A stretch of DNA of 64,000 nucleotides from Selaginella moellendorffii. Taxonomy: Eukaryota; Plantae; Lycopodiophyta. A model generated the notes under the pieces. That model was given only the letters and a program-made list of their open reading frames with translations. It did not search any database and was not told the origin of the DNA. The stretch is taken from NCBI RefSeq assembly GCF_000143415.4, contig NW_003314266.1:518463-582462 (forward strand), in the 5' to 3' direction. Positions 21,901-60,750 of this stretch are shown here, in pieces (positions within the stretch are counted from its first letter, which is position 1; every line of letters begins with the position of its first letter). Position numbers and translations under genes: made by a program.

Positions 21901-22188
21901 GGGAATTTGGTTTAATAAAGAAGAAATGATAATATTTTTGTTTGCTTGTTTATTATTTGAATAGATAAAGAAGCTGATGGCAAGCTTTTCAACTCTAAAG
22001 TCAACAAATCTGTCTTTCTAGCGCATTTATCTGTTTGCGCATAGGATTTTTGGAAATTAAAACATTGCCTACTATTAGATGCGTGTCAAATCTAAGGAGT
22101 GACCAATACATGTCTTGGTCATTTGATCGCGAGGCATTCTCCTTAAGTTCGCGTTCTTTTAGATCGTAGCAAAGGGGAAAAAAGAATC

Positions 22189-23255
22189 ATGGGCAGTCTT
22201 TCGTTCTTCAAGATTCCTGGTGAGTTTCACAGGGCTCCGGATCCACACCCATGGAAAGATCTCGATCACGAAGTTCCAGTGGTGGACATATCCAGCTTGG
22301 AGGATACCGACTCAAGGGAGGGAGCACTCCAAGCTCTCCGGGACGCCTGTGAGAGCTGGGGATTCTTCCAGTTGCTAGGACATGGAATTCCCCGCGAGCT
22401 CAGCGACAAGATGATGGAGGTGGCCTACAAGTTCTTCGATCTTCCCGCCCAAGACAAGCTCGTCTACTGCTCGGACAATGTCTTGGACGATGTCGGTTTT
22501 GCGACCAACTTCGAGGTGTCCAAGAGTCGGCGGCCAAGCGCAACCTGGCAGGAGTTTTTCTTCCAGATGTGCTCCCCACCTTGCGATCCAAGCAAGCTTC
22601 CAGAAAATCCCGCGCGCTACCTAAACGTCTCCACGAGTTATGGAGCGGAGGTCACCGCTCTGGCCAGGCGGCTGCTGGAGCTCTTCTCGGAATCTCTGGG
22701 GCTTGAAGCGAGCGAGCTCGCCGGGAGATTCGAAGGCGAGCTCATGTCCATGAGGCTGAATCACTATCCTCCCTGCCCGGAGCCACAGCTCACCATTGGA
22801 ATCCAGCCTCACTCGGACATAAACGCCTTCACGATCTTGCAGCAGGACGTAGAGGGCCTTCAAGTCCTTCACGATGGAGCGTGGGTGACTCTCAAGCCTT
22901 TGCCCGGAGCTCTCGTGGTCAACGTTGGAGACCAGCTCCAGGTATGCTCTTTCTTTCTTAGATTCTCTACATTGAGTGAGTTTCTTCTCGATTGATCGCA
23001 TGCTAGATTCTCTCCAACGATAAGTTCAAGAGCGTGGAGCATCGAGGAGTGGTCAATGGCGAAAGAGCTCGAGTCTCCATCGCCTGCTTCTATAGCCCCG
23101 GTCTGGGTGCTCGCATTGGGCCCATCCCGGGGCTTGTCAACGAGGAATGCCCCGCGAAATACAAAGAAAGTTTGTATGGAGAATATGCCAAAGCCTCTCT
23201 TAGCATGGAGCTCAATAGGAAGAGCGCTCTGTCCACTCTCAAAGTTGACGTATGA
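22189..23255 (+). CDS. 2-oxoglutarate/Fe(II) dioxygenase (DOXC), exons 22189-22941 and 23007-23255
   Basis: VPVVDIS, ACESWGFFQLLGHGI, RLNHYPPCPEP, HSD..H iron triad (PHSD, VEHR), RVS 2OG-binding motif. Confidence 0.95.
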
Positions 23256-23482
23256 AAAGGTAATTTTGTTTTCGAACAAAAAGAGAATCTTAAGCTTTAG
23301 AAAAAGCAAATCCAAAGGTTTAATAAGACCATCATTCTCAATACATAACACTTCTGTAATGTTTGAGATAAATGGTGCCTCAGGGGAGATCATAGTAGTC
23401 GCCTGTACCACACAAGCACCAGCTTGCAAGAACTTTCATCATGTTTTGTCACAAAAAGAGATTATTTTGAGAGGTTTACTCC

Positions 23483-23758
23483 ATGCTTGTTCTTGCCTCT
23501 GTGGTGCTTGCTATGATCCAATGCCAGGCCGCCGCACCACAACGCAACCATGTAACGCTCAACACCACTCCGTTTCTTGGCACTGCCTCCACGTTCTTCT
23601 GCCCGTGCCACCGCTTCTACTGTTACAGCTCTTCGTTATTTCATCTCCCTGGAACAATGCCGCTTGCTCTTGCCACACTTCACTGGGATTGCAGGACCAA
23701 AAGCCCGAGCTGCCAAGCACTCTTTTCAACCTCTGGAATAAACACTGGTGATCAGTAG
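23483..23758 (+). pseudogene. Possible decayed small secreted Cys-containing peptide gene
   Basis: Signal-like MLVLASVVLAMIQCQA; unit 2 copy (38110-38367) has different indels and frame. Confidence 0.3.
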
Positions 23759-23887
23759 TAGCAAGGTGCCTTGTTTCAGAGCGCAGAGATCTGGAAACGT
23801 AGTACTTTCCATTAGTTTGAGCATGCGGGAGTTCTCTAACCAAGAAACGTGTTTATGCTTACTTGCGAAGGCACAGAGGAGCACAGA

Positions 23888-25680
23888 CTACGAGCCTCTT
23901 CTGGGGCAGCGATAGCACTTTGCGAACAGTCCAAACTCGTGAGCTTGGTTCCTTAGCACGCTGATGCTCGCCCACGTTGCAAAGCCACCGGCCATGATTG
24001 CCATCCAAAGGATGGCTCCCAAGTTCATGCAGTGGAGGCTTAACCAGCTCATGCCAAACGGAGGCTGCTCGATTGCATTCTAAACAGCAGTGAGGTTAGA
24101 TTAGTCTTGAGAACCGTGGCAGAGGTTTCATGCAGTACCTTTTGAGATTTGGAAGTCCAATAGACGAGCACGGACGCAGCACAGGGAATGACGTATAGCC
24201 AGGTCATAAAAATGGACCCAGCCGCCGAGCTCAAAGTTCCATAAAACGGGAACATAATAGCCACCAACAAGGATGCCATAAAGACTGGAGTTCTGACCAA
24301 CGTTTTCTTCCAGTAGCTTGGAGACTGATGAACTTTAAACCACTTCTCTACAATAATATATAGAGGCTGTGACAAAATCCCATACTGGATGAGCTGCTCA
24401 GCACGGCCGTCAATAGTATAGATAGAGAACCGCGTGTTTTGGGTTGAATACCTGGTGTAGGAGCATAAGAACCACTGCCGCATCACGAAATTTTGTGCGT
24501 GGGAGCATAGAGAAGACATTGTACTGCACGTTGTCTCCGAAAGCCCAGTAGACGCTTATAATCGAAAACAGCACCACAGGTGTCATGAACAAGTCCGAAT
24601 AGAGAGAAGTCAGCTTATATTTTGAAGGTTGCCACATCGCATCCATTAGCTCCCTGCAAAGTAAAGATTCAAAGTCGAGTCTAGAACTTGAGTAAAAGCT
24701 TACACTGGGATCGCATGAGCTCCAAATATGATAGTGCTAGCAAACCCGTTAAAGTAGCTCCTGATGCTGTGAGGTGCTGTGTGCCTCAGGTCGTCATCCT
24801 GCACGAAGCTTGGCTCAGAACCGCTCGAAACACACAATATATACCTGGTGAATTGCCAAAGAAGCAAATGCCATATACAAAGCAGTGTAAACGATCATCA
24901 CAAGACCGGCGAAAGACCACATTCTATAGTTCCGAAGGGAGGGAATGAAGACAGTGGTTGCAAAGCATGAACCGAGGACTAAAGTCCAAGTTCTTCGTTC
25001 TAACTTGTCATTGATGTAGTATACGATGCTGCAAACATTCGAATTTGAATGATTTGGAACACCGAATTCATCACTTACTTTCCAACAGCAACCATTTGAA
25101 TAGCTGCAAAGCTGAACATGATTCCAAAGTTAAATATCAGTGTGATTGTTTCCCAGCGGCGTCCTAAAAGACCGCCAAGAACCTCGTGCATCTGCTAGAC
25201 GTAAAGACGTAAAAAACACCAGTTTCTTCGTGAAAAGCCACTCACTCCACCTGTATAGTGTGGCGCTTGAAAGAGTGGGGGTCGTCTTTCAGCCTATTAT
25301 GACGATACTGCAGGTACAAGGTGTTCATCATCCAAGCGCTCCAGCAGCCTACAGTAGACTGAATCAAGATAGCAAGTATGCCAGAAACAAATCCCATTTG
25401 CGACATTGCAAAAGGTAGCGATACTAGCAGTTGCGATATCTGTTAACAGATACCAGAAATTCCAGTGGAAGTAAGAAAAACAAAACCATACCTTGGTTGT
25501 CGACATGTTCAGCCAGGCATCAAAGGTAGAACCCCCATCGCAAAAGACCGTCGAAAAGAAACGCGAAATCGTGGGAGTAGAACCGAAGGAGATGTAAATG
25601 CCAGACGCACTAGCGTCAGACGAAACATGAAGATGATTTGCTTCTCCAGTCTCTGCATCGGCATCATCGTAGGAGGACAT
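23888..25680 (-). CDS. Highly diverged AUX1/LAX-family (AAAP) transporter, copy 1
   Basis: Spliced product collinear with AUX1/LAX: DGGSTFDAW, SLPFAMSQMG, FKRHTIQ/MHEVLGGLLG, YYINDKLERRTWT, TTVFIPSLRNYRMWSF, GAHAIPV/ELMDAMWQP, VYWAFGD, RDAAVVLMLLHQ, NAIEQPP, FGLFAKCYRC; stop at 23888. Confidence 0.9.
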
Positions 25681-26093
25681 CCTTAGATCTTGCGGCAGGG
25701 AAATCTAAAGTTTTTGTGCATACCATATTCTAAAGTCAAAAATTGTTGTCAATGTTTGATGGCGTCTGACGTTATAAGTATGTTCTAGCGATGATTTCTT
25801 CCGCCATCCAAGCAGCTTCTCATAAAGCTGCGCCACTAAGGTATGACGGAATGAGATCATCAGCACCTGGGCGTTATTTACAAAACATATTAAAACAATT
25901 ACGTCGTACTACGTATTTACGTCCGGTCAAGCTGCTTCCAGAACACGTAACGTTCAAGTCGGTCAAGTCGAGGAACTTTACCAATTGAATCTGTGCCAAG
26001 GTCCTACAGTGAAAGCAATATCAGTCAATCTCCTCAATCGTCACTCCGGCACTCACCTAAAGAAGCCGAGGAGCCCTGAGCGCACCGAGCAGC
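25681..26093. promoter_or_regulatory. Putative bidirectional promoter between AUX1/LAX-like and OMT genes
   Basis: 413 bp between divergent ATGs; ACGT cluster at about 25900-25955 and ggtcaa W-box cores at 25925 and 25961. Confidence 0.6.
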
Positions 26094-27258
26094 ATGGAAG
26101 ACGAAAGTTGGATGAAGCTCATATTGATCAACCAGGGACACTTCATCTCCTCGTCCCTCAAGGCCTTGGTGAAGCTCAAGGTACCTGACATCCTCAACAA
26201 AGCCGCACCCTCCTTGCTCTCCCCAGTAGAGATCTGCGACCAGCTGCCGCTGCGCAGCAAAGCCACTCTAGATTCTTCCGCATCTCAGCTGGGTCGACTT
26301 ATGCGTGCTCTGGCCATGTTTGGTGTCTTCCAAGAGTGCCCCTCGTCAGAGGGAGAACAGAGGTATGGCCTCAACGCCGTCTCCAAGCACCTAGTCACAG
26401 AAGGCAATAGCGAGTCAATGGTACCATCGATGATGTTTTTCCCGAAGCAGTATAATGTATGGGACTTGTTACCTGACGCTATACTCGAAGGTGTACAGCC
26501 AGGCTCCAAAGCTCATGGTGGAAAGTCGGTGTTCGAGCTGGACCCAGCCATCGTCAAGGTGTTCAACACCGTCATGTCAGCTTACACGAGACGTACCATG
26601 CGGCTCGCTCTGCAAGTTTACGACGGCTTCCAGCATGCGGAGGTGATTGTGGATGTCGGTGGCAGCTTGGGAGCGTCTCTAGAAATCATCCTTGCCAAGT
26701 ACCCGAACGTCAAAGGGATTAACTTCGATCTCCCAGCGGTCGTGGAACACGCTGCAAAAGTACAAGGTTCGTCACAAATTTGTATGTGTCTTGGAATGCA
26801 CTTACTATCTAATCTTCAGGTATGGAAAACGTCGGAGGAGACATGTTCGTCTCCGTTCCTCAAGGAGACCTCATGTTGCTGAAGGTAAAAAGATGTCTAC
26901 GGCCAAGATGGAAAATCTAAGAGCTAGACTTTGGCATTTACTTTTGCAGTGGGTTCTACACGACTGGAATGACGAAAAAGCTATCAAGATCCTTGAAAAC
27001 TGCCGCCAATCACTTGCAGAGGGGGGCAAGGTGGTGGTAATTGATGCACTTCTGCCGGAGGTGGCTGAAAAAAGCGAGGAATACAGCCTGGCTGACAAGA
27101 ATGCAGTTTTGTATGATCTAGCTATGCTAACAACAGGAGAAGCAGCAAAGGAGAGAACTTACAAGGAGTTGGAGCAAGTTGCGATGGCTGCCGGCTTCTC
27201 CAGCTTATCAGTCAGAGCTAGAGTCGACTCTGCCTCCATTATCGAGATCTATCCTTAA
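26094..27258 (+). CDS. SAM-dependent O-methyltransferase (COMT-like, class II), 3 exons, copy 1
   Basis: N-terminal dimerisation domain (LGRLMRALA, YGLNAVSK), VDVGGSLG, GINFDLP, GGDMF, KWVLHDW catalytic His, KERTYKE; introns ~26767-26819 and ~26885-26949. Confidence 0.95.
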
Positions 27259-27301
27259 AAATTCCAGACAATCAGTGCAATCGAGATATTTGTGAAACGC
27301 A

Positions 27302-28660
27302 TTACCTGCTTGATGCTGTTGCTGGTTGCTGTTCGCGAGAAATCACGTCGTCCTCTGTATCGTCACTGGTTCCATCACTAAAGTCGTTACTGTCGCTCAC
27401 TTCTGCCGGATGATCACTTTCATAAGTTGTGTCCTCCAGTTCTTCATCGTTAACGGCCTTGGAAAGATCCGGCTCAGCCTCAGGCGAGGAATCTGGAGTA
27501 CAAAGACTGCTCCGGCTTCTTCTTCGCGGATCTGTTAGAGGTAGCAAGCTCCGCTTAAGTGGTCTCTTCTTCCTCGAAACAAGCGCCAGTTCCACGTACT
27601 TCCGACGCAAATCAATGTACGGGGACATCTCAATCTTGTAGTCCCAGTGGTAAGCTTCCCTCAAGAACACGAAGTAATAGTTGTTGAGCCGTTCCATGGC
27701 GAAGAACAGCGACTCCCTCCGTAAAAACTTGGCCAAGTCCTCTGGAAGCTGGAGCTCGTCTTTGAGAATCGCTAGATCTCTCACATTCGCTCGCTTCAGC
27801 AACGTCAAGCTTAGAAACTCGTGACAAACCGCGAGAGACCGCTTCCGCGCCTCTGGCGAGCCATCAGGATCGTCAACTTTACCACCACGCTCGTATGGAG
27901 AATCAAACCGGCGCTTCTGGAAGGACAAGAGCTTCAGGTATCTGTCCCTTTCCATCTCGCAGTTGTTCTCGAAAGCTACTCGAAAGCTGTGAACATTTCC
28001 CTCGCAAAACTTGTCCTTGCGGCTCGGGTCTATATGTTTTACCCCCCGGAGCTCTCGAGCCGTGACCGCTAGCGCTGGATCCCAAGCCCCCAGCTCCAGC
28101 ATCGCGTCGTCCTTTTGGTTCCTGGTGATCGTGAAAAAATCCGGGAACCTGACCAGGGTGGTGGTCTCGAAATCCTCGGAGAAGCCAAAGCACGGCTTGA
28201 GAATGCTAAGCTTCTTCACTGGAATCCTCCCTTCCTTGGCCATCATCAAGAGCTTCCTCAAGACCTGGACAGCATACGGCTCGTGCTGCTTTAGAACTTC
28301 CTCCTCCCTCTTCATGAGGTGCTTCATCGTCTCGGTCAGCTCCACAATCTTACGGGACTCCTTGTCACACATCTCAAACATGAGCCGGAATTTCCTCAGA
28401 AAGAAGTCGGAGTCCCTGTTGCGAAATCCCAGCTTCTTGGCGATCTTTTGAAACCGCGCCTTTGAGACGAGCTCCTTGGCAGCCACGGCCCCGGCCACAC
28501 GATGGATGAGCCGCATTTCCTTCTCGCGCACGGCGAGCTTGGCGTAGGTCATCGCGTCCTGGCCGCCGCTGAATCCGCCCATAGATCGCTTGCTCGAGAC
28601 CATACATCCTGTAAGAATGCGAATCCCTGTGGCGGATCCCAGTACCTGGCGTTGCCGCAT
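27302..28660 (-). CDS. PORR (plant organelle RNA recognition) domain protein
   Basis: LRKLLMMA, LGAWDPALAVT, FQKRRFDSPYE, ARKRSLAVCHEFLSLTL, VFLREAY; intronless. Confidence 0.88.
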   Translation of the reverse strand: MRQRQVLGSATGIRILTGCMVSSKRSMGGFSGGQDAMTYAKLAVREKEMRLIHRVAGAVAAKELVSKARFQKIAKKLGFRNRDSDFFLRKFRLMFEMCDKESRKIVELTETMKHLMKREEEVLKQHEPYAVQVLRKLLMMAKEGRIPVKKLSILKPCFGFSEDFETTTLVRFPDFFTITRNQKDDAMLELGAWDPALAVTARELRGVKHIDPSRKDKFCEGNVHSFRVAFENNCEMERDRYLKLLSFQKRRFDSPYERGGKVDDPDGSPEARKRSLAVCHEFLSLTLLKRANVRDLAILKDELQLPEDLAKFLRRESLFFAMERLNNYYFVFLREAYHWDYKIEMSPYIDLRRKYVELALVSRKKRPLKRSLLPLTDPRRRSRSSLCTPDSSPEAEPDLSKAVNDEELEDTTYESDHPAEVSDSNDFSDGTSDDTEDDVISREQQPATASSR

Positions 28661-28757
28661 CGCGCTTGTAAAGCCCTAAACCTTTCTTCCCGGAAGAACC
28701 CTAAAAAGAATAGCTTTTTAACAGTGAATCATCTAATCTAACATAGATAAGACAATA

Positions 28758-29152
28758 TTATTGTCCTCGTATATCTAAGGTGGTCCTCGAGCAATTTGCA
28801 CACTGCTTGCAGAGGTCGCACTTATCCTTGCCCAGGTCCTCTCGCAAACTGCGCATGTCCTCACCCAGTTCCTGGTGCAGTTTGTGCAGCTCCTCACTCA
28901 GTTTTTTGTGCAGGTCCTCGAGCAAATCCTCGCCCAATTTGCGCAGGGCCTCCAGCAACATCTCGCCCAAGTCCACAGTCTCGCTACAAATCAAAAGTCA
29001 ACCAAAGATGAGGAACAAACAAACTTACGTGATGGGTGGATTTCATTCACACCCTTTAACTTGCAGCCGTCTTCGAACACTCTGCAGTGCTGTGTCATGG
29101 GACACCAAGATGTTAACAGTAGTAGTGCTATCATTAAAAGTATTTGATTCAT
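28758..29152 (-). pseudogene. Frameshifted copy of the small coiled-coil gene at 43340-43735
   Basis: One base shorter (ggg vs gggg at ~29034) before the intron, so exon 2 is out of frame. Confidence 0.4.
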
Positions 29153-29159
29153 GTTAGTC

Positions 29160-30485: not shown

Positions 30486-30872
30486 TTAGCAACCAGTGAC
30501 ATAATCCGCCTTGAACTGGCAGCCGTCATTGTAAGTCTTGATACCACACTTGCCGCAGTTACGAGCACGGAGTTCGTCAAAGGCAGTGATCATCTCAGAG
30601 CCATTGAGGTCGCAGTTGGAGCCAGAGACAAAGAGGCCACAGTGGCCAGAGCAGACGCCGCTGGAGCCTTTGTTGCCGCCGGTGAAGTAGCGGTTGCTAG
30701 GCTGAATCTGGCGGCGAGCAGCATCACAGTCGCTCTGTGCGAGATCCTTGCACAGTGTAGAGCCAGCGCACGAGAAGGAGTCCTGAGCATGAGAGCCTTG
30801 CAACAACATGATGATCATGAGATTCACAACAAGTAAGACATTGAGAGCTAGCGCCATGCTCGTCGACTTCAT
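30486..30872 (-). CDS. Secreted 10-cysteine KP4 killer-toxin-like protein (128 aa)
   Basis: Hydrophobic signal peptide ending SHA-Q. Mature part has CAGSTLC, VCSGHCGLFV, NCGKCG and ADYVTGC*, resembling KP4 CxGSxxC, CxxCG and NYVxxC. Intronless. Confidence 0.72.
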   Translation of the reverse strand: MKSTSMALALNVLLVVNLMIIMLLQGSHAQDSFSCAGSTLCKDLAQSDCDAARRQIQPSNRYFTGGNKGSSGVCSGHCGLFVSGSNCDLNGSEMITAFDELRARNCGKCGIKTYNDGCQFKADYVTGC

Positions 30873-36650: not shown

Positions 36651-36848
36651 ATATCTTTGGCGGGAATTTTGTGTAATAAAGAAAAAATGAGTAATATCTT
36701 GTCTCGATTTGTGGGTGTCATTTTTGCGGAGGGGCCATGCTAAAAGCAAATGCTTCCATACACGCATCTCGTCTATAGGTCAATTCTAAATCTGACTTTT
36801 CAGCGCATCTAAAGCGTGATTTATCGTAGCAAAGGGGAAAAAAGAATC

Positions 36849-37932
36849 ATGGGCAGTCTTTCGTTCTTCAAGATTCCTGGGGAGTTTCACAGGGCTCCGG
36901 ATCCACACCCATGGAAAGATCTCGATCACGAAGTTCCAGTGGTGGACATATCCAACTTGGAGGAGACCGACTCAAGGGAGAGAGCACTCCAAGCTCTCCG
37001 GGACGCCTGTGAGAGCTGGGGATTCTTCCAGTTGCTAGGACATGGAATTCCCCGCGAGCTCAGCGACGAGATGATGGAGGTGGCCTACAAGTTCTTCGAT
37101 CTTCCAGCCCAAGACAAGCTCGTCTACTACTCGGACAATGTCTTGGACGAGGTCGGTTTTGCGACCAGCTTCGAGCCTCCGAAGTTCGAGGTGTCCAAGA
37201 GTCGGCGGCCAAGCGCAACCTGGAAGGAGTTTTTCTTCCAGATGTGCTCCCCACCTTGCGATCCAAGCAATCTTCCAGAAAATCCCGCGCGCTACCGAAA
37301 CGTCTCCACGAGTTATGGAGCGGAGATCACCGCTCTGGCCAGGCGGCTGCTGGAGCTCTTCTCGGAATCTCTGGGACTTGAAGCGAGCGAGCTCGCCGGG
37401 AGATTCGAAGGCGAGCTCATGTCCATGAGGCTGAATCACTATCCTCCCTGCCCGGAGCCACAGCTCACCATTGGAATCCAGCCTCACTCGGACATAAACG
37501 CCTTCACGATCTTGCAGCAGGACGTAGAGGGCCTTCAAGTTCTTCACGATGGAGCGTGGGTGACTCTCAAGCCTTTACCCGGAGCTCTCGTGGTCAACAT
37601 TGGAGACCAGCTCCAGGTATGCTCTTGCTTTCTTAGATTCTTTACATTGAGTGAGTTTTTCTTCTCGATTGATCGCGTGCTAGATTCTCTCCAACGATAA
37701 GTTCAAGAGCGTGGAGCATCGAGGAGTGGTCAATGCCGAAAGAGCTCGAGTCTCTATCGTCTGCTTCTACAGCCCCGGTCTGGGTGCTCGCATTAGGCCC
37801 ATCCCGGAGCTTGTCAACGAGGAATGCCCCGCGAAATACACCGAAAGTTTGTATGGAGAATACGCCAAAGCCTCTCTTAGCATGGAGCTCAATAGGAAGA
37901 GCGCTCTGTCCACTCTCAAAGTTGACGTATGA
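36849..37932 (+). CDS. 2-oxoglutarate/Fe(II) dioxygenase, copy 2 (exons 36849-37616, 37684-37932)
   Basis: Same intact motifs as copy 1; 5-aa longer loop (SFEPPKFEVS). Confidence 0.95.
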
Positions 37933-38487
37933 AAAGATAATTTTGTTTTCGAACAAAAAGAGAATCTTAAGCTTTAGAAAAAGTAAATTCAAAGATGATC
38001 ATTCTCAATACATAACACTTCTGTAATGTTTGAAATAAATGGATAGTAGTCGTCTAAGAACTTTCATCATATTTTGCCACAAAAGAGATCATTTTGAGAG
38101 TTTTACTCCATGCTCGTTCTTGCCTCTGTGGTGCTTGCAGCTTCTTCTATGATCCAATGCCAGGCCGCCGCACCAGAACGCAACCATGTAACACCACTGC
38201 GTTTCTTGACACTGCCTCCACGTTTTCTGCCCGTGCCACCGGTTAGCTCTTCTCGTTGTTTCATCTCCCTGGAACAGGGTTGCAACTATGCCGCTTGCTC
38301 TTGCCACAGTTCACTTAAAGCCCGCGAAGCTCGAGCTGCCAAGCACTCTTTTCAACCTCTGGAATAAACACTAGTAGCAAATTGTTTCAGAGCGCAGAGA
38401 TCTGGAAACGTAATCCTTTCCATTAGTTTGAGCATCTGACCAAGAAACGTGTTTATGCTTACTTGCGAAGGCACAGAGGAGCACAGA

Positions 38488-40276
38488 CTACGAGCCTCTT
38501 CTGGGGCAGCGATAGCACTTTGCGAACAGTCCAAACTCGTGAGCTTGGTTCCTTAGCACGCTGATGCTCGCCCACGTTGCAAAGCCACCGGCCATGATTG
38601 CCATCCAAAGGATGGCTCCCAAGTTCATGCAGTGGAGACTTAACCAGCTCGTGCCAAACGGAGGCTGCTCGATTGCATTCTAAACAGCAGTGAGGTTAGA
38701 TTAATCTTTAGAACCGTGCCAGAGGTTTCATGCGGTACCTTTTGAGATTTGGAAGTCCAGAAGACGAGCACGGACGCAGCACAGGGAATGACGTATAGCC
38801 AGGTCATAAAGATGGACCCAGCCGCCGAGCTTAAAGTTCCATAAAACGGGAACATAATAGCCACCAACAAGGATCCCAAAAAGACCGGAGTTCTGACCAA
38901 CGTTTTCTTCCAGTAGCTTGAAGACTGATGGATTTTAAACCACTTCTCTACAATAATATATAGAGGCTGTGAGCAAATCCCATACTGGATGAGCTGCTCA
39001 GCACGGCCGTCAATAGTATAGATAGAGAACCGCGTGTGAATACCTGATGTAGGAGCATAAGAACCACTGCCGCATCACGAAATTTTGTGCGTGGGAGCAT
39101 AGAGAAGACATTGTACTGCACGTTGTCTCCGAAAGCCCAGTAGACGCTTATAATCGAAAACAGCACCACAGGTGTCATGAACAAGTCCGAATAGAGAGAA
39201 GTCAGCTTGTATTTTGAAGGTTGCCACATCGCATCCATTAGCTCTCTGCAAAGTAAAGATTCAAAGTCGAGTCTAGAACTTGAGTAAATGCTTACACTGG
39301 GATCGCATGAGCTCCAAATATGATAGTGCTAGCAAACCCGTTAAAGTAGCTCCTGATGCTGTGTGGTGCCGTGTGCCTCACGTCGTTATCCTGCACGAAG
39401 CTCAGAACCGCTTGAAACACACAATATATACCTGGTGAATCGCCAAAGAAGCAAATGCCATATACAAAGCAGTGCAAACGATCATCACAAGACCGGCGAA
39501 AGACCACATTCTATAGTTCCGAAGGGAGGGAATGAAGACAGTCGTTGCAAAGCATGAACCGAGGACTAAAGTCCAAGTTCTTCGTTCTAACTTGTCATTG
39601 ATGTAGTATACTACGCTGCAAACATTCGAATTTCAACGATTTGGAACACCGAATTCATCACTTACTTTCCAACAGCAACCATTTGAATAGCTGCAAAGCT
39701 GAACATGATTCCAAAGCTAAATATCAGTGTGATTGTTTCCCAGCGGCGTCCTAAAAGACCGCCAAGAACCTCGTGCATCTGCTAGACGTAAAGAATGTAA
39801 AGACGTAAAGAACACGAGTTTCTTCGTGAAAAGCCACTCACTCCACCTGTATAGTGTGGCGCTTGAAAGAGTGGGGGTTGTCTTTCAGCGTATTATGACG
39901 ATACTGCAGGTATAAGGTGTTCATCATCCAAGAGCTCCAGCAGCCTACAGTAGACTGAATCAAGATAGCAAGTATGCCAGAAACGAATCCCATTTGCGAC
40001 ATTGCAAAAGGTAGCGACAGCAGCAATTGCGATATCTGTTAACAAAGACCAGAAATTCCAGTGGAAGAAAAACAAAAACCATACCTTGGTTGTCGACATG
40101 TTCAACCAGGCATCAACGGTAGAACCCCCATCGCAAAAGACCGTCGAAAAGAAACGCGAAATCGTGGGAGTAGAACCAAACGAGATGTGAATGCCAGACG
40201 CACTAGCGCCAGACGAAACATGAAGAACATAATTCGCTTCTCCAGTCTCTGCATCGGCATCATCGTAGGAGGACAT
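38488..40276 (-). CDS. Diverged AUX1/LAX-family transporter, copy 2
   Basis: Exons appear in frame; frame-changing indels fall in introns (one intron reduced to 41 nt). Confidence 0.82.
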
Positions 40277-40682
40277 CCTTAGATCTTGCGGCAGGGAAAT
40301 CTAAAGGTTTGTGTGCATACCATATTATGAGGTCAAATATTCTTGTCGATGTCTGATCGCATCTTACGTTATAAGCATGTTCTAGCGATGATTTCTTCCG
40401 CCTTCTCATCAAGCTGCGCCACTAAGACATGACGGAATGTGATCATCACTTCCAAGCCTGTGGGAGTTATTTACAAAACATACTAAAACTATTACGTACG
40501 TACTACGTATTTACGCCCGGTCAAGCTGGGTGGGTCCATAACACGTAACGTTCAAGTCGGTCAAGTAGAGGAACTTTACCAATTGAATCTGTGCCAAGGT
40601 CCTACAGTGAAAGCAATATCGGTCAATCTCCTCAATCGTCACTCCGGCACTCACCTAAAGAACTCGAAGAGCCCTGAGCGGC

Positions 40683-41844
40683 ATGGAAGACGAAAGTTGG
40701 ATGAAGCTCATATTGATCAACCAGGGATACTTCATCTCCTCGTCCCTCAAGGCCTTGGTGAAGCTCAAGGTACCTGACATCCTCAACAAAGCCGCACCCT
40801 CGCTCTCCCCAGTAGAGATCTGCGACCAGCTGCCGCTCCGCAGCAAAGCCACTCTAGATTCTTCCGCATCTCAGCTGGGTCGACTTATGCGTGCTCTGGC
40901 CATGTTTGGTGTCTTCCAAGAGTGCCCCTCGTCAGAGGGAGAACAGAGGTATGGCCTCAACGCCGTCTCCAAGCACCTAGTCACAGAAGGCAATAGCGAA
41001 TCAATGGTACCATCGATGATGTTTTTCCCGAAGCAGTATAATGTATGGGACTTGTTACCTGACGCTATACTCGAAGGTGTACAGCCAGGCTCCAAAGCTC
41101 ATGGTGGAAAGTCGGTGTTCGAGCTGGACCCAGCCATCGTCAAGGTGTTCAACACCGTCATGTCAGCTTACACGAGACGGACCATGCGGCTCGCTCTGCA
41201 AGTTTACGACGGCTTCCAGCATGCGGAGGTGATTGTGGATGTCGGTGGCAGCTTGGGAGCGTCTCTAGAAATCATCCTTGCCAAGTACCCGAACGTCAAA
41301 GGGATTAACTTCGATCTCCCAGCGGTCGTGGAACACGCTGCAAAAGTACAAGGTTCGTCACAAATTTGTATGTGTCTTGAAATGCACTTACTATCTAATC
41401 TTCAGGTATGGAAAACGTCGGAGGAGACATGTTCGTCTCCGTTCCTCAAGGAGACCTCATGTTGCTGAAGGTAAAAAGATGTCTACGGCCAAGATGGAAA
41501 ATCTAAGAGCTAGACTTTGGCATTTACTTTTGCAGTGGGTTCTACACGACTGGAATGACGAAAAAGCTATCAAGATCCTTGAAAACTGCCGCCAATCACT
41601 TGCAGAGGGAGGCAAGGTGGTGGTAATTGATGCACTTCTGCCGGAGGTTGCTGAAAAAAGCGACGAATATAGCCTGGCTGACAAGAATGCAGTTTTGTAT
41701 GATCTAGCTATGCTAACAACAGGAGAAGCAGCAAAGGAGAGAACTTACAAGGAGTTGGAGCAAGTTGCGATGGCTGCCGGCTTCTCCAGCTTATCAGTCA
41801 GAGCTAGAGTCGACTCTGCCTCCATTATCGAGATCTATCCTTAA
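40683..41844 (+). CDS. O-methyltransferase, copy 2
   Basis: Almost identical to copy 1 (one codon shorter, one E>D change). Confidence 0.95.
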
Positions 41845-41887
41845 AAATTCCAGACAATCAGTGCAATCCAGATATTTGTGAAACGCA

Positions 41888-43242
41888 TTACCTGCTTGAT
41901 GCTGTTGCTGGTTGCTGTTCGCGAGAAATCACGTCGTCCTCTGTATCGTCACTGGTTCCATCACTAAAGTCGTTACTGTCGCTCACTTCTGTTGGATGAT
42001 CACTTTCATAAGTTGTGTCCTCCAGTTCTTCATCGTTAACGGCCTTGGAAAGATCCGGCTCAGCCTCAGGCGAGGAATCTGGAGTACAAAGACTGCTCCG
42101 GCTTCTTCTTCGCGGATCTGTTAGAGGTAGCAAGCTCCGCTTAAGTGGTCTCTTCTTCCTTGAAACAAGCGCCAGTTCCACGTACTTCCGACGCAAATCA
42201 ATGTACGGGGACATCTCAATCTTGTAGTCCCAGTGGTAAGCTTCCCTCAAGAACACGAAGTAATAGTTGTTGAGCCGTTCCATGGCGAAGAACAGCGATT
42301 CCCTCCGCAAAAAACTTGGCCAAGTCCTCTGGAAGCTGGAGCTCGTCTTTGAGAATCGCTAGATCTCTCACATTCGCTCGCTTCAGCAACGTCAAGCTTA
42401 GAAACTCGTGACACACCGCGAGAGACCGCTTCCGTGCCTCTGGCGAGCCATCCGGATCGTCAACTTTAACACCACGCTCGTATGGAGAATCAAACCGGCG
42501 CTTCTGGAAGGACAAGAGCTTCAAGTATCTGTCCCTTTCCATCTCGCAGTTGTTCTTGAAAGCTACTCGAAAGCTGTGAGCATTTCCCTCGCAAAACTTG
42601 TCCTTGCGGCTCGGGTCAATATGTTTTACCCCCCGGAGCTCTCGAGCCGTGACCGCTAGCGCTGGATCCCAAGCCCCCAGCTCCAGCATCGCGTCGTCCT
42701 TTTGGTTCCTGGTGATCGTGAAAAAATCCGGGAACCTGACCAGGGTGGTGGTCTCGAAATCCTCGGAGAAGCCAAAGCACGGCTTGAGAATGTTAAGCTT
42801 CTTCACTGGAATCCTCCCTTCCTTGGCCATCATCAAGAGCTTCCTCAAGACCTGGATAGCATACGGCTCGTGCTGCTTTAGAACTTCCTCCTCCCTCTTC
42901 ATGAGGTGCTTCATCGTCTCGGTCAGCTCCACAATCTTACGGGACTTTTTGTCACACATCTCAAACATGAGCCGGAATTTCCTCAGAAAGAAGTCGGAGT
43001 CCCTGTTGCGAAATCCCAGCTTCTTGGCGACCTTTTGGAACCTTTGAGACGAGCTCCGTGGCAGCCACGGCCCCGGCCACACGATGGATGAGCCGCATTT
43101 CCTTCTCGCGCACGGCGAGCTTGGCGTAGGTCATCGCGTCCTGGCCGCCGCTGAATCCGCCCATAGATCGCTTGCTCCAGACCATACATCCTGTAAGAAT
43201 GCGAATCCCTGTGGCGGATCCCAGTACCTGGCGTTGCCGCAT
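41888..43242 (-). pseudogene. PORR gene copy with two frameshifts
   Basis: 5-nt deletion near 43040 and +1 A near 42310 relative to copy 1. Confidence 0.9.
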
Positions 43243-43339
43243 CGCCCTTGTAAAGCCCTAAACCGTTCTTCCCGCCAATGGGAAGAACCCTAAAAAGAAG
43301 GAACTTAACAGTGAATCATCTAACATAGACAAGACAATA

Positions 43340-43735
43340 TTATTGTCCTCGTATATCTAAGGTGGTTCTCGAGCAATTTGCACACTGCTTGCAGAGGTCG
43401 CACTTATCCTTGCACAGCTCCTCGCGCAAACTGCGCATGTCCTCACCCAGTTCCTGGCGCAGTTTGTGCAGCTCCTCACTCAGTTTTTTGTGCAAGTCCT
43501 CGAGCAAATCCTCGCCCAATTTGCGCAGGGCCTCCAGCAACATCTCGCCCAAGTCCACAGTCTCGCTACAAATCAAAAGTCAAACAAAGATGAGGAACAA
43601 ACAAACTTACGTGATGGGGTGGATTTCATTCACACCCCTTAACTTGCAGTCGTCTTCGAACACTCTGCAGTGCTGTGTCACGGGACACCAAGATGTTAAC
43701 AGTAGTAGTGCTGTCATTAAAAGTATTTGATTCAT
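43340..43735 (-). CDS. Hypothetical 116-aa protein, hydrophobic N-terminus plus ~11-residue helical repeats (exons 43735-43611, 43565-43340)
   Basis: 45-nt GTAAG..TAG intron joins MNQILLMTALLLLTSW.. in frame to ETVDLGEMLLEALRKLGED..; no homology recognised. Confidence 0.4.
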
Positions 43736-43799
43736 GTTAGTTTTTGCCGAAGAAACCCAGTAGATCCAAGAGCCTTTAATCTTAGCCGTCTACGGGTGG

Positions 43800-51763: not shown

Positions 51764-53986
51764 ATGCGAGGGAAGAGAGCGATCACTTTAGGTAAGGGCT
51801 CGTCGATTCTAAGGCGCTGGTTTCGATCTGATCGCCAAGAGCAGCAAAACCTCCAGGGATCTAGCCGCCGAGAACAGCAACATCAGCAGCCGCGTAGAGA
51901 ACAGGGAAATTTCGACAGCAAGTCAAGCTTTCTAGCGGCAGTGAAGGCGTGTAGTTGCGCCAAGGATCTCCGAGAGGGCAGGCGCCTCCATTCTAGCGCT
52001 GTTGCCAATGGCCTCGCCTCGAGCATCGTCGTGGCAAATGCGCTGGTCAGTATGTTCGCGAAATGCGGCAGCCTTGCGGATTCTCGCGCCGTCTTCGACG
52101 AGATGGCGATCCACGACGTGGTGTCCTGGAATTCGCTGATCCTGGGCTACGCAGAGAATGGCGAGCCGGAATCAGCATTGGAACTCTTCGATCGCATGAG
52201 AAGAGAGGGTTTCAAGGCTGACAATCGGACCTACGTTGCGGCCCTCATGGCGTGCATTGCTCTGGGCGCACAGGAAGACATGAAGCGGCAGCACGGGAAG
52301 AAATCTCTGGAAAGAATGGTGGTTCTAGAGAAGGGTCGAGAGATCCATGCTCAAGCTTCCACCGCTGGCTATGGATCCAACATCTACGTTGCAAACACGC
52401 TCATCAACATGTACTCAAAGCTTGGGTGCCTTGAGGAGGCTCGAGAGGTGTTCGACCGGATTGGAAAGGAGGAGAGGAGCGTTGTGTCGTGGACCGCGAT
52501 GATGATGGGGTGTAACGAGAATGGAGACGAGCAGGAAAGTTTGGAGCTCTTTCGGCAAATGCAACGCCATGGCTGTCCTCCCAACTCTCGGACTTTTGTC
52601 GCAGCGCTCATGGCCTGTGCTGGATTGGCCGAGAAAGCTGATGGGAGTGACAAGGCCGAATATCTTGAGAAGGGACGAGCGCTTCATTCACAAGCTGTGA
52701 AAGGTGGCTGCGGCTCGGACGTTTTCTTCGCGAGCACTTTGATCCATATGTATTGCAAGTGTGGGAGCCTGGAAGATGCTAGAGCCGCGTTCCAGCGAAT
52801 GCAGCGCTTGGACGTGGTGTCCTGGAACGCTCTCATCCTGGGACACGTTGAGAATGGCGAGAGCCAGCGTGCACTCGAGATCTTCGGCGGCATGAAGAGG
52901 ATCGAGAGACATCGCCGCTGCTCGCCGAACGCTCGGACTTTCGTTGCTGCGCTCATGGCCTGCTCCAGCCTGGCTGCACAAGAAGCTGGCAAACAGGTTG
53001 ACGGGAAGCTCGTGAAGCCGGAGAGTTTGCAGAGAGGGATGGATGTACATTCGCAAGCGGTGCAGTGTCGCTGCGAAACGGAGCTTTTCGTGGCCACCAC
53101 CTTGATCGACATGTATTCGAAGTGCGGGAGCATGGTCGAAGCCCGAAAGTGCTTCGACAAGATGCCCAGCCGCAACGTCGTTACGTGGAATTCTCTCATC
53201 CTGGGCTACGCGGAGAACGGTGACGGTGAGCAGGCCTTGCAAGCCTTCCGGCGGATGAAAGCCAACAAACGTCTCGTGCCGGACACTCGAACTTACGCTG
53301 CAGTGCTGATGGCCTGTGGCAGCATGGCGTCGCTTGAAACCGCGAGAGACGTCCATAGCGAGATTCGTGGTCTCGGGCTCGACCAAGATGGATTCATCGC
53401 CAACTGCTTGGTGGACTGCTACTGCAACTGTGGGAGCTTGGAAGAGGCAACACAGGTTTTTGACGCGCTGGGCAGCAAGAACGTTGTCTCCTGGAGCTCG
53501 CTCATAGCAGGATACAGCCGCCACGGCCACGTAAAACAGGCTCTCGACTTGTTCCAGAAGATGCAAGACGGTGGCTTCCAGGCGGACAAGATGACCTTCA
53601 CGTCCATCCTCACGGCTTGCAGCCACGCCGGACTGGTGGAAAAAGGGAAGGAGCTGTTCGAGCTTATGGCCTCCAAGCACGGCGTGGAGCCGGACATGGA
53701 CCACTACCACTGCATGATCGATCTTCTAGGCCGCGCAAACCATCTGGAGGAGGCAGTGGCGATGGCGGAGGGAATGCCGTTTGATCCAAATGCCGTGACT
53801 TGGAAGACGGTGCTGGGGGCGTGCCAGAAGTGGAACAACGTCCGGATCGCGAGGGTGGCGTTTGAGAGGCTGCGGCAAGTCGACGGGGAGCAAGCGGCGC
53901 CGTACGTTCTCATGGCAAACATCTTTGGAAGCTCGATCTCGTCCAGCGACAAGTCTTGCTCCAACTGCTCGACGAGGAAGACTTAA
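51764..53986 (+). CDS. PLS-class PPR protein with truncated E domain
   Basis: Repeats such as DVVSWNSLILGYAENG, TFVAALMAC, LIDMYSKCG; HYHCMIDLLGRA, WKTVLGAC; no DYW domain. Confidence 0.93.
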   Translation: MRGKRAITLGKGSSILRRWFRSDRQEQQNLQGSSRREQQHQQPRREQGNFDSKSSFLAAVKACSCAKDLREGRRLHSSAVANGLASSIVVANALVSMFAKCGSLADSRAVFDEMAIHDVVSWNSLILGYAENGEPESALELFDRMRREGFKADNRTYVAALMACIALGAQEDMKRQHGKKSLERMVVLEKGREIHAQASTAGYGSNIYVANTLINMYSKLGCLEEAREVFDRIGKEERSVVSWTAMMMGCNENGDEQESLELFRQMQRHGCPPNSRTFVAALMACAGLAEKADGSDKAEYLEKGRALHSQAVKGGCGSDVFFASTLIHMYCKCGSLEDARAAFQRMQRLDVVSWNALILGHVENGESQRALEIFGGMKRIERHRRCSPNARTFVAALMACSSLAAQEAGKQVDGKLVKPESLQRGMDVHSQAVQCRCETELFVATTLIDMYSKCGSMVEARKCFDKMPSRNVVTWNSLILGYAENGDGEQALQAFRRMKANKRLVPDTRTYAAVLMACGSMASLETARDVHSEIRGLGLDQDGFIANCLVDCYCNCGSLEEATQVFDALGSKNVVSWSSLIAGYSRHGHVKQALDLFQKMQDGGFQADKMTFTSILTACSHAGLVEKGKELFELMASKHGVEPDMDHYHCMIDLLGRANHLEEAVAMAEGMPFDPNAVTWKTVLGACQKWNNVRIARVAFERLRQVDGEQAAPYVLMANIFGSSISSSDKSCSNCSTRKT

Positions 53987-54133
53987 GGTAGCAGTTGCTT
54001 TATTTTCCACGCAACCTGAAGTTTAATTTGATTTCTAGAAAGGTGATGCAAGAGTAACAAATCAAGTTGTCTTCGTCGGAACAGCAGTTCTCTATAATAT
54101 GGAGATGGCCTGTGGATCCAGAGCATCAAATCG

Positions 54134-55659
54134 ATGGACTTGGGTGTGGCCTTGTTCCTCCTTAGCGTCGGCTTGACCACACTGTCACTTCTCATCGGGA
54201 GAATTCTATCTTCGCAGCGGCGGCTCCCTCCAGGTCCCTTCTGTTTCCCCATTTTTGGAGCACTCTTCTCCCTCCAGGAGCCACTCCACCAGCACTTTGC
54301 GAAGATCAGCAAGAAGTATGGGCCGATTGTCTTCCTCAAGGTCGGAATGGTCCCGTTTGTGGTGGTGACCGACAAGGAAATGGCAGCGCAGGTTCTTAAG
54401 GCCCACGACCTCGAGTTTGCAAGCCGACCGGACGAAGAGTTCTTTCGGATCGTCAGCCACGACTGGAACGATCTTATCCTGGCGCCCATCGGTGAGAAGT
54501 GGAAGACAATGAGGAGGATTTGTAGCACACACCTGTTTAACAACAGTACGCTAAAGGCTAGCGCAGGATTCCGGGAGTCGGAGATGAAGCATGCAGTCAA
54601 GGCCATTTTCCAGCATTCCGGGACAACGATCAAGCTGCAAGAGGTTTTGAGCAATCTCGCGTCAAATTCACTATGCCTGGTTCTTTTTAGCAAGCGGGGG
54701 GTGGAAGTGGTGGATCTCATCCGGAACATACTCGGTCTAAGCTTGAACTTGAACATTGGAACCCTGCTTCCGGCACTCGACTGGCTGGATCTTCATGGAG
54801 TCTACAAGAAGCTCAACACGGAGCTCGTACCTCGCCTTAAGCTCGTGCTGGAAGATCAAATCGACAAGCATCGACGCAGGAAAGATGAAGCTGGGGATAC
54901 ATTCGTCCCTCAGGACTTCACCGACGTTCTTATATCTCTCGAGGACAAGGATAAGCTGTCAAACATCTCCATCTTGGCACTGCTCTCGGTAAGCATCTAG
55001 ATCGTGGTCGTGATCACTGAAAAACTCTAGTTTTGCGTCAGGACATGGTTATTGCAGGGTTGGAAACTTCACTAGTGACGCTCGAGTGGACGATGGCGGA
55101 GCTCATAAACCATCCCCAAGTCATGTCCAAGGCTCAAGAGGAGATCGACAGCGTTGTAGGGACAGCTCGCGCGGTGCAAGAGTCCGACCTTCCAAACCTT
55201 CCATACATCGAAGCCATTGTCAAGGAATCACTGCGTCTCCACCCGGCGGTGCCACTGGGCGCTCCTCACATGAATCCCAAGCCTGTCAAGCTGGGAGGCT
55301 ACACCATCCCTGGCGGCTGCAAGGTTCTCGTAAACATATGGGCCATTGGACGCGATCCCGCTCGCTGGTCCGACCCAGAAGCGTTCCAGCCGGAGCGCTT
55401 TCTCGGCTCCTCCATCTCTCCCAACGGGCAGAACTTTGACTTCCTTCCATTCTCATCGGGGAGGAGAGTTTGTGTTGGCTATCCACTCGCGATGAGATCC
55501 ATCCCTTTTTTCGTGGCCAGTTTGCTCCAGGCATTCGATTGGAGTCCTGCTAACCCGAGCGGGATCGACATGGAAGAATGCACGAGAAGTACAACTATGA
55601 AGCTGAATGCTGACTTGCTTGTAAACGCGTCCATCAGGGTCGATCAAAATATAATATAA
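54134..55659 (+). CDS. Cytochrome P450, CYP71 clan, copy 1 (exons 54134-54988, 55042-55659)
   Basis: Membrane anchor, LPPGP, WxxxR, AGLETS, ESLR, PERF, FSSGRRVCVG; single phase-0 intron before the I-helix core. Confidence 0.95.
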
Positions 55660-55865
55660 AGCTTTCTATACCATGTTGATTAAATTGTTTAGCGTTGGAG
55701 ATGTTTCAAATACAATATAAATACAAATACTAGGTGTTTTAAAGTCCAATGCTCGATGTTAATAGCAACAGCTAGTACATTACGCAATCCTGAACAGAGT
55801 AGATGTAGAAGTAGTCAATCTGTTAAAGCTCTAGGGGCCTCCTTCAAGCCTCGATGGGCACCCGT

Positions 55866-56305
55866 GTTGAGTTTCTGGACAAAGTCGCAGCGATGCGGTT
55901 GTTTACATTGAAAGTCGTTGGTTTTCTCATGCCGATTTTCTTCCAGGCGAATTACCGCAATACCAGTGAGTTTAGAGCACTTGAAGTATGAAGTCTTCAC
56001 GATTGTACCAGTCAAGGTCAGCATTTTCACCAAGATCTCCCGGAAATTCTAGTTAAAACTCGTCTTTTGCTCGTACATTGAGGACCAATGTGTTTGCTCC
56101 AACTTTGTGGACCCTGCGATTGCGTAATCCAGGGACGTGATCGCCCCTCAGGAGTTAAATATGTGATTGATGGAAGTGGCGACGTCGTGACTGAAAATCA
56201 CTGTCCGTGGCTGTGATGTGTTTGGAGATTACTCCTCCAAGCGGCTAAAATCAGTGACATTGGAATCGTCTGGAAACCTAGACTTTTTTTCTGATTCCAA
56301 GTCAT
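55866..56305 (+). pseudogene. SIP 3' fragment with small internal inversion
   Basis: Matches 51120-51640; 56113-56164 is the reverse complement of ~51440-51490. Confidence 0.88.
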
Positions 56306-58434: not shown

Positions 58435-58566
58435 GGTACCAGTTGCTTTATTTTCCTGAAGTTTAATTTGATTTTTTGATGCAAGAGTAACAAATCAAGT
58501 TGTCTTCGTCGGAACAGCAGTTCTCTATAATATGGCGATGGCCTGTGGATCCAGAGCATCAAATCG

Positions 58567-60094: not shown

Positions 60095-60293
60095 AGCTTT
60101 CGTTGTCAAGCTATAGCGTTGGAGAGGTGATCGTGTAGATGTTTCAGATAACAATATAAATACAAATACTAAGTCCAATGCTCGATGTTAATAGCAACAG
60201 CTAGTACATTAGGCAATCCTGAACAGAGTAGATGTATATGTAGTGAAACTGTTAAAGCTCTAGGGGCCTCCTACAAGCCTCGATGGGCATCCA

Positions 60294-60750
60294 AAAGTCG
60301 CAGCAGCCGACGGAACGGTGATGCGGTTGTTTACATTGAAAGTCGTTGGTTTTCTCACGCTGATTTTCTTCCAGGCGAATTAGTTCTCCCGAACCGCAAT
60401 ACCAGTGAGTTTAGAGCACTTCAAGTATGAAGTCTTCACGATTGTACCAGGCAAGGTCAGCATTTTCACCAAGATCTCCAGGAAATTTTAGTTAAAACTC
60501 TTCATTTGCTCGTGGAAGACTTGGTGTTTGCTCCAGCTTTGTGGATTCTGCGAGTGCGTAATCCAGGGACGTGATCAGGAGTCAAATATGTGATTGATGG
60601 AAGTGGGGACGTAGTGACTGTGAAAATCACAGTCCGTGGCTGTGGTGTGTTTGGAGATTACTCCTCCAAGCGGCCAAAATCAGTGACATTGGAATCGTCT
60701 GGAAACCTGGACTTTTTCTCTGATTCCAACACTGGATTCGTCATATTGCT
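60294..60750 (+). pseudogene. SIP 3' fragment, copy 3
   Basis: [21 protein letters not shown] in frame; shares the inversion with copy 2. Confidence 0.88.

Follow-up and report, generated by a model that had tools for sequence, protein, structure and literature searches.

Does a protein that keeps the fold of the plant auxin importers still carry auxin once the pocket that holds the hormone has been rewritten? The question is raised by a gene of the AUX1/LAX type on the minus strand, at positions 23888-25680, of a 64,000-nucleotide stretch of Selaginella moellendorffii DNA (the window; locus scaffold GL377570.1). The original prediction, made from the bare sequence, described its product as an extremely diverged AUX1/LAX homologue with a remodelled predicted binding site, neofunctionalised to carry a metabolite other than indole-3-acetic acid (IAA) and plausibly linked to the O-methyltransferase next to it. 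We find an intact gene that is transcribed and spliced and that evolves under purifying selection. Judging from the residues that it has kept and lost, we put at roughly 0.55 the probability that it belongs to a fast-evolving, Selaginella-specific branch of AUX1/LAX and encodes a proton-coupled importer of an organic acid, whose preferred substrate is no longer IAA.

The gene model was built by reading the three minus-strand frames and joining exons at GT-AG sites. The stop-codon end and the ATG fall exactly at 23888 and 25680, and the eight coding exons total 1419 nt, i.e. 472 codons and a stop in an intact open reading frame (ORF). The seven introns in the coding sequence (CDS) are all GT-AG and each 46-59 nt long. 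In the lines below, residues of the protein (aa) are set against their AUX1 counterparts, TM stands for transmembrane helix, and copy 2 is the tandem copy given last.

25492-25680, minus strand: coding exon 1, aa 1-63, with the N-terminal tail, TM1a (DGGSTFDAWLN) and the unwound segment of TM1 up to Thr62-Lys63; the exon 1-exon 2 junction is seen in RNA, and the ORF that begins at this ATG is uninterrupted both in copy 2 and on the other haplotype.
25251-25439, minus strand: coding exon 2, aa 64-126, with TM1b (ISQLLVSLPF, including Ser65 and Gln66) and TM2; aligned to AUX1 residues 60-121 (E 1e-10), junctions in RNA.
25079-25191, minus strand: coding exon 3, aa 127-164, ending in phase 2, with TM3; Ile150, Met151 and Gln158 stand at AUX1 F145, L146 and Q153, junctions in RNA.
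24845-25028, minus strand: coding exon 4, aa 164-225, with TM4-TM5; Arg196 and Arg199 stand at AUX1 H191 and R194, junctions in RNA.
24704-24798, minus strand: coding exon 5, aa 226-257, with TM6a and the unwound segment GFASTIIFGAHAIPV; one residue is deleted at AUX1 Tyr244 and His253 is kept, junctions in RNA.
24452-24653, minus strand: coding exon 6, aa 257-324, with TM6b-TM7 and the start of TM8; Glu258, Ser273, Asp277 and His323 stand at AUX1 E254, Y269, T273 and H321, junctions in RNA.
24139-24393, minus strand: coding exon 7, aa 325-409, with TM8-TM10; Gln327, Ile330, Leu331, Gln333 and Pro334 stand at AUX1 T325, F328, A329, T331 and P332, junctions in RNA.
23888-24079, minus strand: coding exon 8, aa 410-472 and the stop, with TM11 and the C-terminal FGLFAKCYRC motif; junction in RNA.
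38488-40276, minus strand: tandem copy 2 of the LAX-like gene, 8 exons, 473 aa, 96% protein identity and TM1 and TM6 altered in the same way; RefSeq XP_024525549 corresponds to it from Met59 onward.

Exons 2, 4, 6 and 7 each score above the cut-off for the Pfam domain Aa_trans (PF01490) when taken alone, and the same domain is precomputed for P0001, which together with P0215 and P0214 makes up the RefSeq models of the three copies of this gene. The RefSeq entry for the window gene is named "auxin transporter-like protein 3 isoform X1" (XP_024525543, P0215, 414 aa) and is identical to residues 59-472 of our model. The claim that the protein is collinear with the family through to FGLFAKCYxC is borne out, the window protein reading FGLFAKCYRC; the Cys pair of the FGLFAKCYQC motif of LAX3 has been modelled as a disulfide (PMC12364708).

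Besides copy 2, a third intact copy of 473 aa lies on the other haplotype (GL377566.1). The pairwise ratio of nonsynonymous to synonymous substitution rates (dN/dS) is 0.25 between copies 1 and 2, 0.23 between copy 1 and the other haplotype and 0.30 between copy 2 and the other haplotype, with nonsynonymous changes significantly below the neutral expectation (binomial p 1e-5 to 2e-4). Intact tandem and haplotype copies with such low dN/dS argue against decay. RNA from three studies, two runs in assembled form and two as raw stranded reads, was mapped to 23700-25900 at 98% likeness. All seven CDS introns were seen at exactly the predicted borders, in spliced contigs and in strand-specific reads across the three studies, and the raw reads over the gene are all oriented as minus-strand RNA. 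The original prediction had named neutral decay with no spliced transcript as an outcome that would speak against it; what we found are three intact copies, a dN/dS of 0.19-0.30 and spliced RNA for every coding intron. The RNA also reveals an intron beyond the coding region.

23791-23862, minus strand: intron of 72 nt in the 3' untranslated region, beginning 25 nt past the stop codon; the joint 23790/23863 is present in an X6 contig and in one X21 read.

In run X11, labelled organism B, 32% of the gene's sampled 31-mers are present, pointing to a near-identical sequence under another species label.

The window protein is 40-42% identical to Arabidopsis LAX1, to the LAX of rice, pine, Marchantia and Diphasiastrum and to the conventional LAX of the same genome (40-43% over every LAX compared), against 70-80% between Marchantia and seed-plant LAX. 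Measured along the tree, some 2.1 changes per site separate the window gene from its nearest conventional LAX, and on both measures "extremely diverged" was an apt description. Its place in the family is nevertheless clear from the matches of P0001, whose residues 3-412 align over ~410 residues with the Protein Data Bank (PDB) chains of LAX3 (E 2e-115) and AUX1 (E 4e-110). Close relatives are confined to the same species in every search that we ran. When 1.84 billion representatives were searched exhaustively by HMMER with exon 7, only three proteins fell below 1e-10, all from S. moellendorffii, and the fragments in the output of this search that were considered as orthologues were rejected as conventional LAX or unrelated types from the family of amino acid/auxin permeases (AAAP). 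A word search for short fragments of exon 7 found none, a word search with P0001 found no protein between 47% and 100% identity, and a profile of the divergent subclade placed only S. moellendorffii proteins above the conventional LAX.

In our tree (IQ-TREE, LG+C20 PMSF), the window genes fall within a Selaginella-only subclade (support 100/99) together with P0208/9, P0231, P0230 and P0232, and this subclade is nested in the land-plant AUX1/LAX clade (100/100), not with other AAAP groups; the window lineage is set apart by an additional branch, ~1.0 changes per site in length. The AAAP phylogeny that had been proposed as a check gives a long branch inside land-plant LAX. Since the subclade is confined to one genus, an expansion in the Selaginella lineage is the economical reading. 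A placement as sister to the rest of the land-plant LAX is supported at only 46/50, and trees in which Selaginella or lycophyte monophyly was forced are not rejected and are marginally better by the approximately unbiased (AU) test (p-AU 0.64-0.66). The same genome holds at least five less-divergent LAX genes. As to where the divergent LAX-like family resides, scaffold GL377567.1 (locus L003, 4271226-4297112) carries a tandem array of it, with four or more Aa_trans genes in 26 kb and, scattered among them, two aldo-keto reductase genes and a Helitron-like ORF. Five further proteins, P0005, P0023, P0035, P0049 and P0050, are short fragments of another AUX1-related type (motif AIAFGLYIMPLNFMWEK...FPFFGPLNS), distinct both from conventional LAX and from the Selaginella subclade.

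The AlphaFold2 (AF2) model was made from residues 59-472 only, on an alignment of 31 sequences, with TM1a of the 472-aa reading outside the model. It has a pLDDT of 87 and a pTM of 0.85, with a helix break at His253. The comparison with AUX1/LAX structures that the original prediction had called for gives a match of fold, at a template-modelling score (TM-score) of 0.92-0.94 and 1.7-2.7 Å to 9h61, 9h63 and 9lva (LAX3/AUX1). The predicted structure is a LeuT/APC fold of 11 helices with unwound TM1 and TM6, of the AUX1/LAX type.

Two sets of structures published in 2025 allow the pocket to be read residue by residue. In AUX1 the IAA carboxylate is bound by Tyr244, Gln62 and Gln153 and the indole NH by Asn58 and Thr325, with contacts from Ala61, His249 and Ala329, and Gln59, called invariable in the family, forms a gate paired with Tyr269 and Thr273 (PMC12337342). 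LAX3, whose numbering is that of AUX1 minus two, has the same polar site and a hydrophobic sub-site made up of Phe143, Leu144, Val249, Phe326, Ala327 and Pro330; its gate residues are His189, Arg192, Glu252 and Thr329, His247 and His319 are the proposed proton-coupling pair, and transport is abolished in Y242F, F326A, A327F and the His mutants (PMC12364708). From these two papers we mapped 21 pocket and gating positions. The window protein keeps seven of them, namely Gln66 (Q62), Gln158 (Q153), Arg199 (R194), His253 (H249), Glu258 (E254), His323 (H321) and Pro334 (P332), and has changed the other 14: N58T, Q59K, A61S, F145I, L146M, H191R, Y244 deleted, V251I, Y269S, T273D, T325Q, F328I, A329L and T331Q. 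Seed plants show no change at the 21 positions and Marchantia one.

Every one of the 14 residues that give the indole sub-site and the TM1/TM7 gate their shape is replaced. The aromatic Phe145, Tyr244 and Phe328 have become Ile, a gap and Ile, leaving no aromatic residue in the indole sub-site, and among the 13 IAA-contact residues reported as fully conserved only Gln62, Gln153, His249 and Pro332 survive, with the remaining nine (Asn58, Ala61, Phe145, Leu146, Tyr244, Val251, Thr325, Phe328 and Ala329) changed or deleted. The segments singled out by the original prediction were read correctly: TM1 has LNMSTTK/ISQL for the canonical FSCASNQ/VAQV, placing a Lys in the unwound segment (Lys63, at the position of AUX1 Gln59), and TM6 has GFASTI-IFGAHA for the canonical GATNILYTFGGHA, one residue shorter, with the TM6 His retained as His253 and the gap placed at the Tyr244 position by both HMMER and MAFFT. 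The protein carries the two His at the sodium-site positions that characterise AUX1/LAX (AUX1 His249 and His321), as His253 and His323. In neither pocket nor gate, the latter reading Lys63, Ser273 and Asp277 at Gln59, Tyr269 and Thr273, does it agree with the auxin-transporting AUX1/LAX proper, the seed-plant/Marchantia type known as 'LAX D'. Most of the seven retained residues are present even in algal and protist relatives, and the set looks like family-wide machinery.

Taken at the level of aligned residues, then, the fold and the predicted proton-coupling and carboxylate-handling residues (His249, His321, Gln62, Gln153, Arg194 and Glu254) are kept while the putative specificity shell is rebuilt. 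Under the reading that we prefer, the importer would stay proton-coupled through the retained His pair and carboxylate-handling residues, and its substrate would be an organic acid other than IAA. The Lys63-Asp277 pair may stand in for the hydrogen-bond switch of Gln59 with Thr273 and Tyr269. The loss of all aromatic side chains, together with the replacement of Ala329 by Leu, argues for a hydrophobic sub-site that is smaller or of another shape, and the new Gln, Lys and Asp residues would make the site more polar.

The comparison with other lycophytes bears on how much of this is peculiar to the window gene. The conventional LAX of S. moellendorffii (P0160, P0233, P0236-P0238) and of Diphasiastrum complanatum (P0090, P0094, P0167, P0240) depart from the 'fully conserved' pocket at 7-11 of the 21 positions, with substitutions that include Asn58 to Val, Phe or Ala, Thr325Glu, Phe328Leu, Ala329Leu and Thr331Leu, and Tyr244Phe in three of the Diphasiastrum proteins; the seed-plant pocket is common to Marchantia and not to lycophytes. 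With departures of this number in the conventional proteins, part of the "remodelling" is lycophyte-wide. Two premises of the original prediction have to be narrowed accordingly. The very high conservation of AUX1/LAX in land plants holds for the seed-plant/Marchantia group and fails for the conventional lycophyte LAX. The remodelled binding site stands in that the pocket is rebuilt where LAX3 Y242F, F326A and A327F abolish transport; as a peculiarity of this gene it does not stand for the changes at Thr325, Phe328, Ala329, Thr331 and Asn58, which are common to conventional lycophyte LAX.

A number of findings weigh against a changed substrate, and there are two other explanations. Half of the changed positions (Asn58, Thr273, Thr325, Phe328, Ala329, Thr331 and His191) are altered in conventional lycophyte LAX as well, and Diphasiastrum and algal relatives have a Phe in place of Tyr244, so that the seed-plant pocket is not the only one that fits this fold and may not be the only one that fits auxin transport. 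The AU tests are compatible with a subclade inside lycophyte LAX as well as with one that is sister to other land-plant LAX, and a dN/dS of ~0.25, though it signifies purifying selection, is not tight. It can be argued that the protein is still an importer of auxin, whether of IAA or of a different natural auxin (phenylacetic acid, for example), and that its pocket drifted in a lycophyte-specific manner while its function stayed unchanged. Such a history would account for the retention of Gln62, Gln153, His249, Arg194, Glu254 and His321, which serve carboxylate binding, release and proton coupling in LAX3/AUX1, and the conventional lycophyte LAX, presumably auxin transporters, already carry Ala329Leu, Phe328Leu, Thr325Glu and the Asn58 substitutions. 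It is harder to reconcile with the deletion of Tyr244, with a Lys in place of the Gln59 that has been called invariable (PMC12337342) and with three aromatic pocket residues that are all aliphatic or gone. Moreover, the at least five less-divergent LAX genes could cover auxin import in this genome, and the sister paralogues swap even the coupling His249 for Glu or Val, which shows that the auxin mechanism does not bind this clade. On balance we regard continued auxin import as unlikely.

The other explanation concerns the 5' end, where a further intron overlaps the start codon.

25653-25723, minus strand: alternative 5' intron of 71 nt, GT-AG, whose excision deletes the ATG at 25680; the joint 25652/25724 is present in one X1 contig.

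In the transcript spliced in this way the upstream exon has an in-frame stop and no ATG, and the next in-frame Met is Met59. The RefSeq models of all three gene copies (P0215, P0214 and P0001) likewise start isoform X1 at Met59 and isoform X2 at Met127. A product from Met59 has no TM1a, a segment that a LeuT-fold carrier is expected to need. The main product could therefore be an N-terminally truncated protein (from Met59 or Met127) that does not transport, from a gene that is slowly being lost or has taken on a non-carrier role. In keeping with this, the first 58 codons are without significant constraint, at a dN/dS of 0.3-0.98 that rests on few sites and is not distinct from neutral, and read depth drops over 25624-25697. 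These points, too, count against the importer that we favour. On the other side, none of the three copies interrupts the ORF from ATG 25680, whose sole indel is in frame, residues 47-58 (DGGSTFDAWLN) align with TM1a of the paralogues and of conventional LAX, the remainder of the protein is under significant purifying selection, and the 5' joint comes from one contig of one run, among small numbers of reads (25 and 32). A truncated, non-transporting product seems to us quite improbable, and a full-length importer of an organic acid other than IAA remains our preferred interpretation.

The link to neighbouring enzymes that the original prediction thought plausible calls for a look at the surroundings of the gene.

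22189-23255, plus strand: 2-oxoglutarate/Fe(II) dioxygenase (2ODD) gene, convergent with the transporter; of the DOXC type, nearest to ANS and O-demethylases and not DAO-like; intact in copy 2.
26094-27258, plus strand: COMT-type O-methyltransferase (OMT) gene, divergent from the transporter; exon 1 intact in copy 2.
22163-29158, no strand assigned: unit 1 of a duplicated 7-kb segment with the 2ODD gene, the LAX-like gene, the OMT gene and a PORR-domain gene; 95% identical in self-BLAST to 36823-43741.
36823-43741, no strand assigned: unit 2 of the duplicated 7-kb segment, from self-BLAST; its enzyme genes were checked and are intact.

The start codons of the OMT and transporter genes stand head-to-head, 413 bp apart. 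Minus-strand RNA reads (25772-25900) extend more than 200 nt upstream of the transporter ATG, to less than 200 bp from the OMT start codon, and the interval between the two genes has almost no untranscribed spacer. The other haplotype has the same gene order. We considered whether the neighbours might be genes of auxin metabolism (DAO/IAMT) and rejected this: the dioxygenase is ANS/O-demethylase-like (E 1e-42, vs 9e-15 for DAO), and the methyltransferase is of the COMT type and not SABATH. Between the two units, exon 1 of the OMT gene (26094-26795 vs 40683-41381) has 2 residue differences and a 1-codon deletion, and the dioxygenase (22189-23255 vs 36849-37932) has ~20 residue differences and a 5-codon insertion, constraint on these two co-duplicated genes being unequal. 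Elsewhere in the subclade, paralogue P0232 has a cytochrome P450 gene (L005:12028-13589, GL377638.1) 378 bp downstream on the same strand, and other paralogues lie amid the aldo-keto reductases of GL377567.1; a terpene synthase was sought beside P0209, where only retroelement remains were found.

It can be hypothesized that the transporter, 2ODD and OMT genes make up a functional metabolic gene cluster whose carrier moves the substrate or product of the two enzymes, a proposal compatible with the organic-acid importer. The three genes are contiguous, with the head-to-head start codons and the adjoining transcription just described; the tandem duplication took in the whole unit and all three genes are intact; the other haplotype has them in this order too; and P450 and aldo-keto reductase genes accompany other paralogues. 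Each of these points has an ordinary explanation as well. Segmental duplication copies whatever it spans, and the PORR-domain gene was duplicated too. Haplotypes would be syntenic in any case, genes are densely packed in this genome, one paralogue is without an enzyme neighbour, and members of such large enzyme families are often adjacent by chance. Within 5 kb there are two enzyme classes (2ODD and OMT) only, beside the one transporter. The link between carrier and OMT, resting only on adjacency, co-duplication and synteny, is suggestive only, and we hold a true cluster at this locus to be unlikely. Distinctly unlikely, in our estimation, is the broader scenario in which the auxin-carrier scaffold was repeatedly recruited in Selaginella for specialised metabolites, with a subclade of ~12 members diversifying its pocket paralogue by paralogue beside pathway enzymes, and with the 2ODD-carrier-OMT group as a true lycophyte cluster that has its own importer. 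If the neighbouring enzymes were indeed linked, a family of hormone carriers would have been recruited into specialised metabolism.

Two further features of the window may be recorded. A called gene at 30486-30872, of 128 aa, matches Pfam PF15474 (MU117), and the right-hand part holds a second set of tandem repeats of 87-95% identity (52111-56300 vs 56571-60729, and 54092-55659 and 58525-60094 vs 61727-63330).

The 2025 papers on AUX1 and LAX3 call the pocket, Gln59 and the two His conserved across the family, and the Selaginella gene and its paralogues are natural counter-examples. They also offer a ready panel for asking which residues set auxin specificity and what else the scaffold carries. 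For lycophyte genomes a caution follows, in that proteins annotated as 'auxin transporter-like' should not all be counted as capacity for auxin transport.

How, then, does this gene stand beside the systems already described? The review of Singh et al. 2018 recognises a Selaginella-only clade, 'LAX C', of 12 members, for which auxin is not a proven substrate (PMC6275028). Matched to our subclade, which comprises the window type, P0208/9, P0230/P0060, P0231, P0232 and fragments, 'LAX C' agrees closely, both being restricted to Selaginella, and the branch of the window gene is probably this clade. The review predates the structures and does not discuss the residues of the pocket, the Lys, the deletion in TM6, expression or the neighbouring genes; the RefSeq accessions of the gene are not cited in the literature that we searched. 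The clade is thus already known, and what is new is the residue-level reading of the pocket against solved structures, the evidence for expression and constraint, and the gene context.

With Arabidopsis AUX1 and LAX3 (9jdr, 9lva, 9h61 and 9h63) the window protein shares the predicted fold, the collinear layout of 11 helices with broken TM1 and TM6, both proposed proton-coupling His, Gln62, Gln153, Arg194, Glu254, Pro332 and the C-terminal FGLFAKCYxC. It differs from them in having only ~41% identity, 14 of the 21 pocket and gate residues replaced, Tyr244 deleted in TM6a, a Lys at Gln59 and an Asp at Thr273. The conventional lycophyte LAX are intermediate in character: like the window protein, they have Thr325, Phe328, Ala329, Thr331 and Asn58 substituted relative to seed plants, but unlike it they keep Gln59, Tyr244 (or Phe), a full-length TM6a and Tyr269, and their identity to the LAX of seed plants and Marchantia is 47-62%, where the window protein is at ~40%. 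The sister paralogues P0208/P0209, P0231, P0230 and P0232 have both Gln59Lys and the TM6a deletion in common with the window protein, and from the alignment these two look like derived characters of the Selaginella subclade. All of the sister paralogues keep His321 and the TM1 Lys; the TM6 His (His249), in contrast to the window protein, has given way to Glu in P0208 and P0231 and to Val in P0230, and P0232 has a Val aligned at this site with a His one residue earlier. Within the subclade, the window lineage is alone in retaining the TM6 His at this site and in having an Asp at Thr273.

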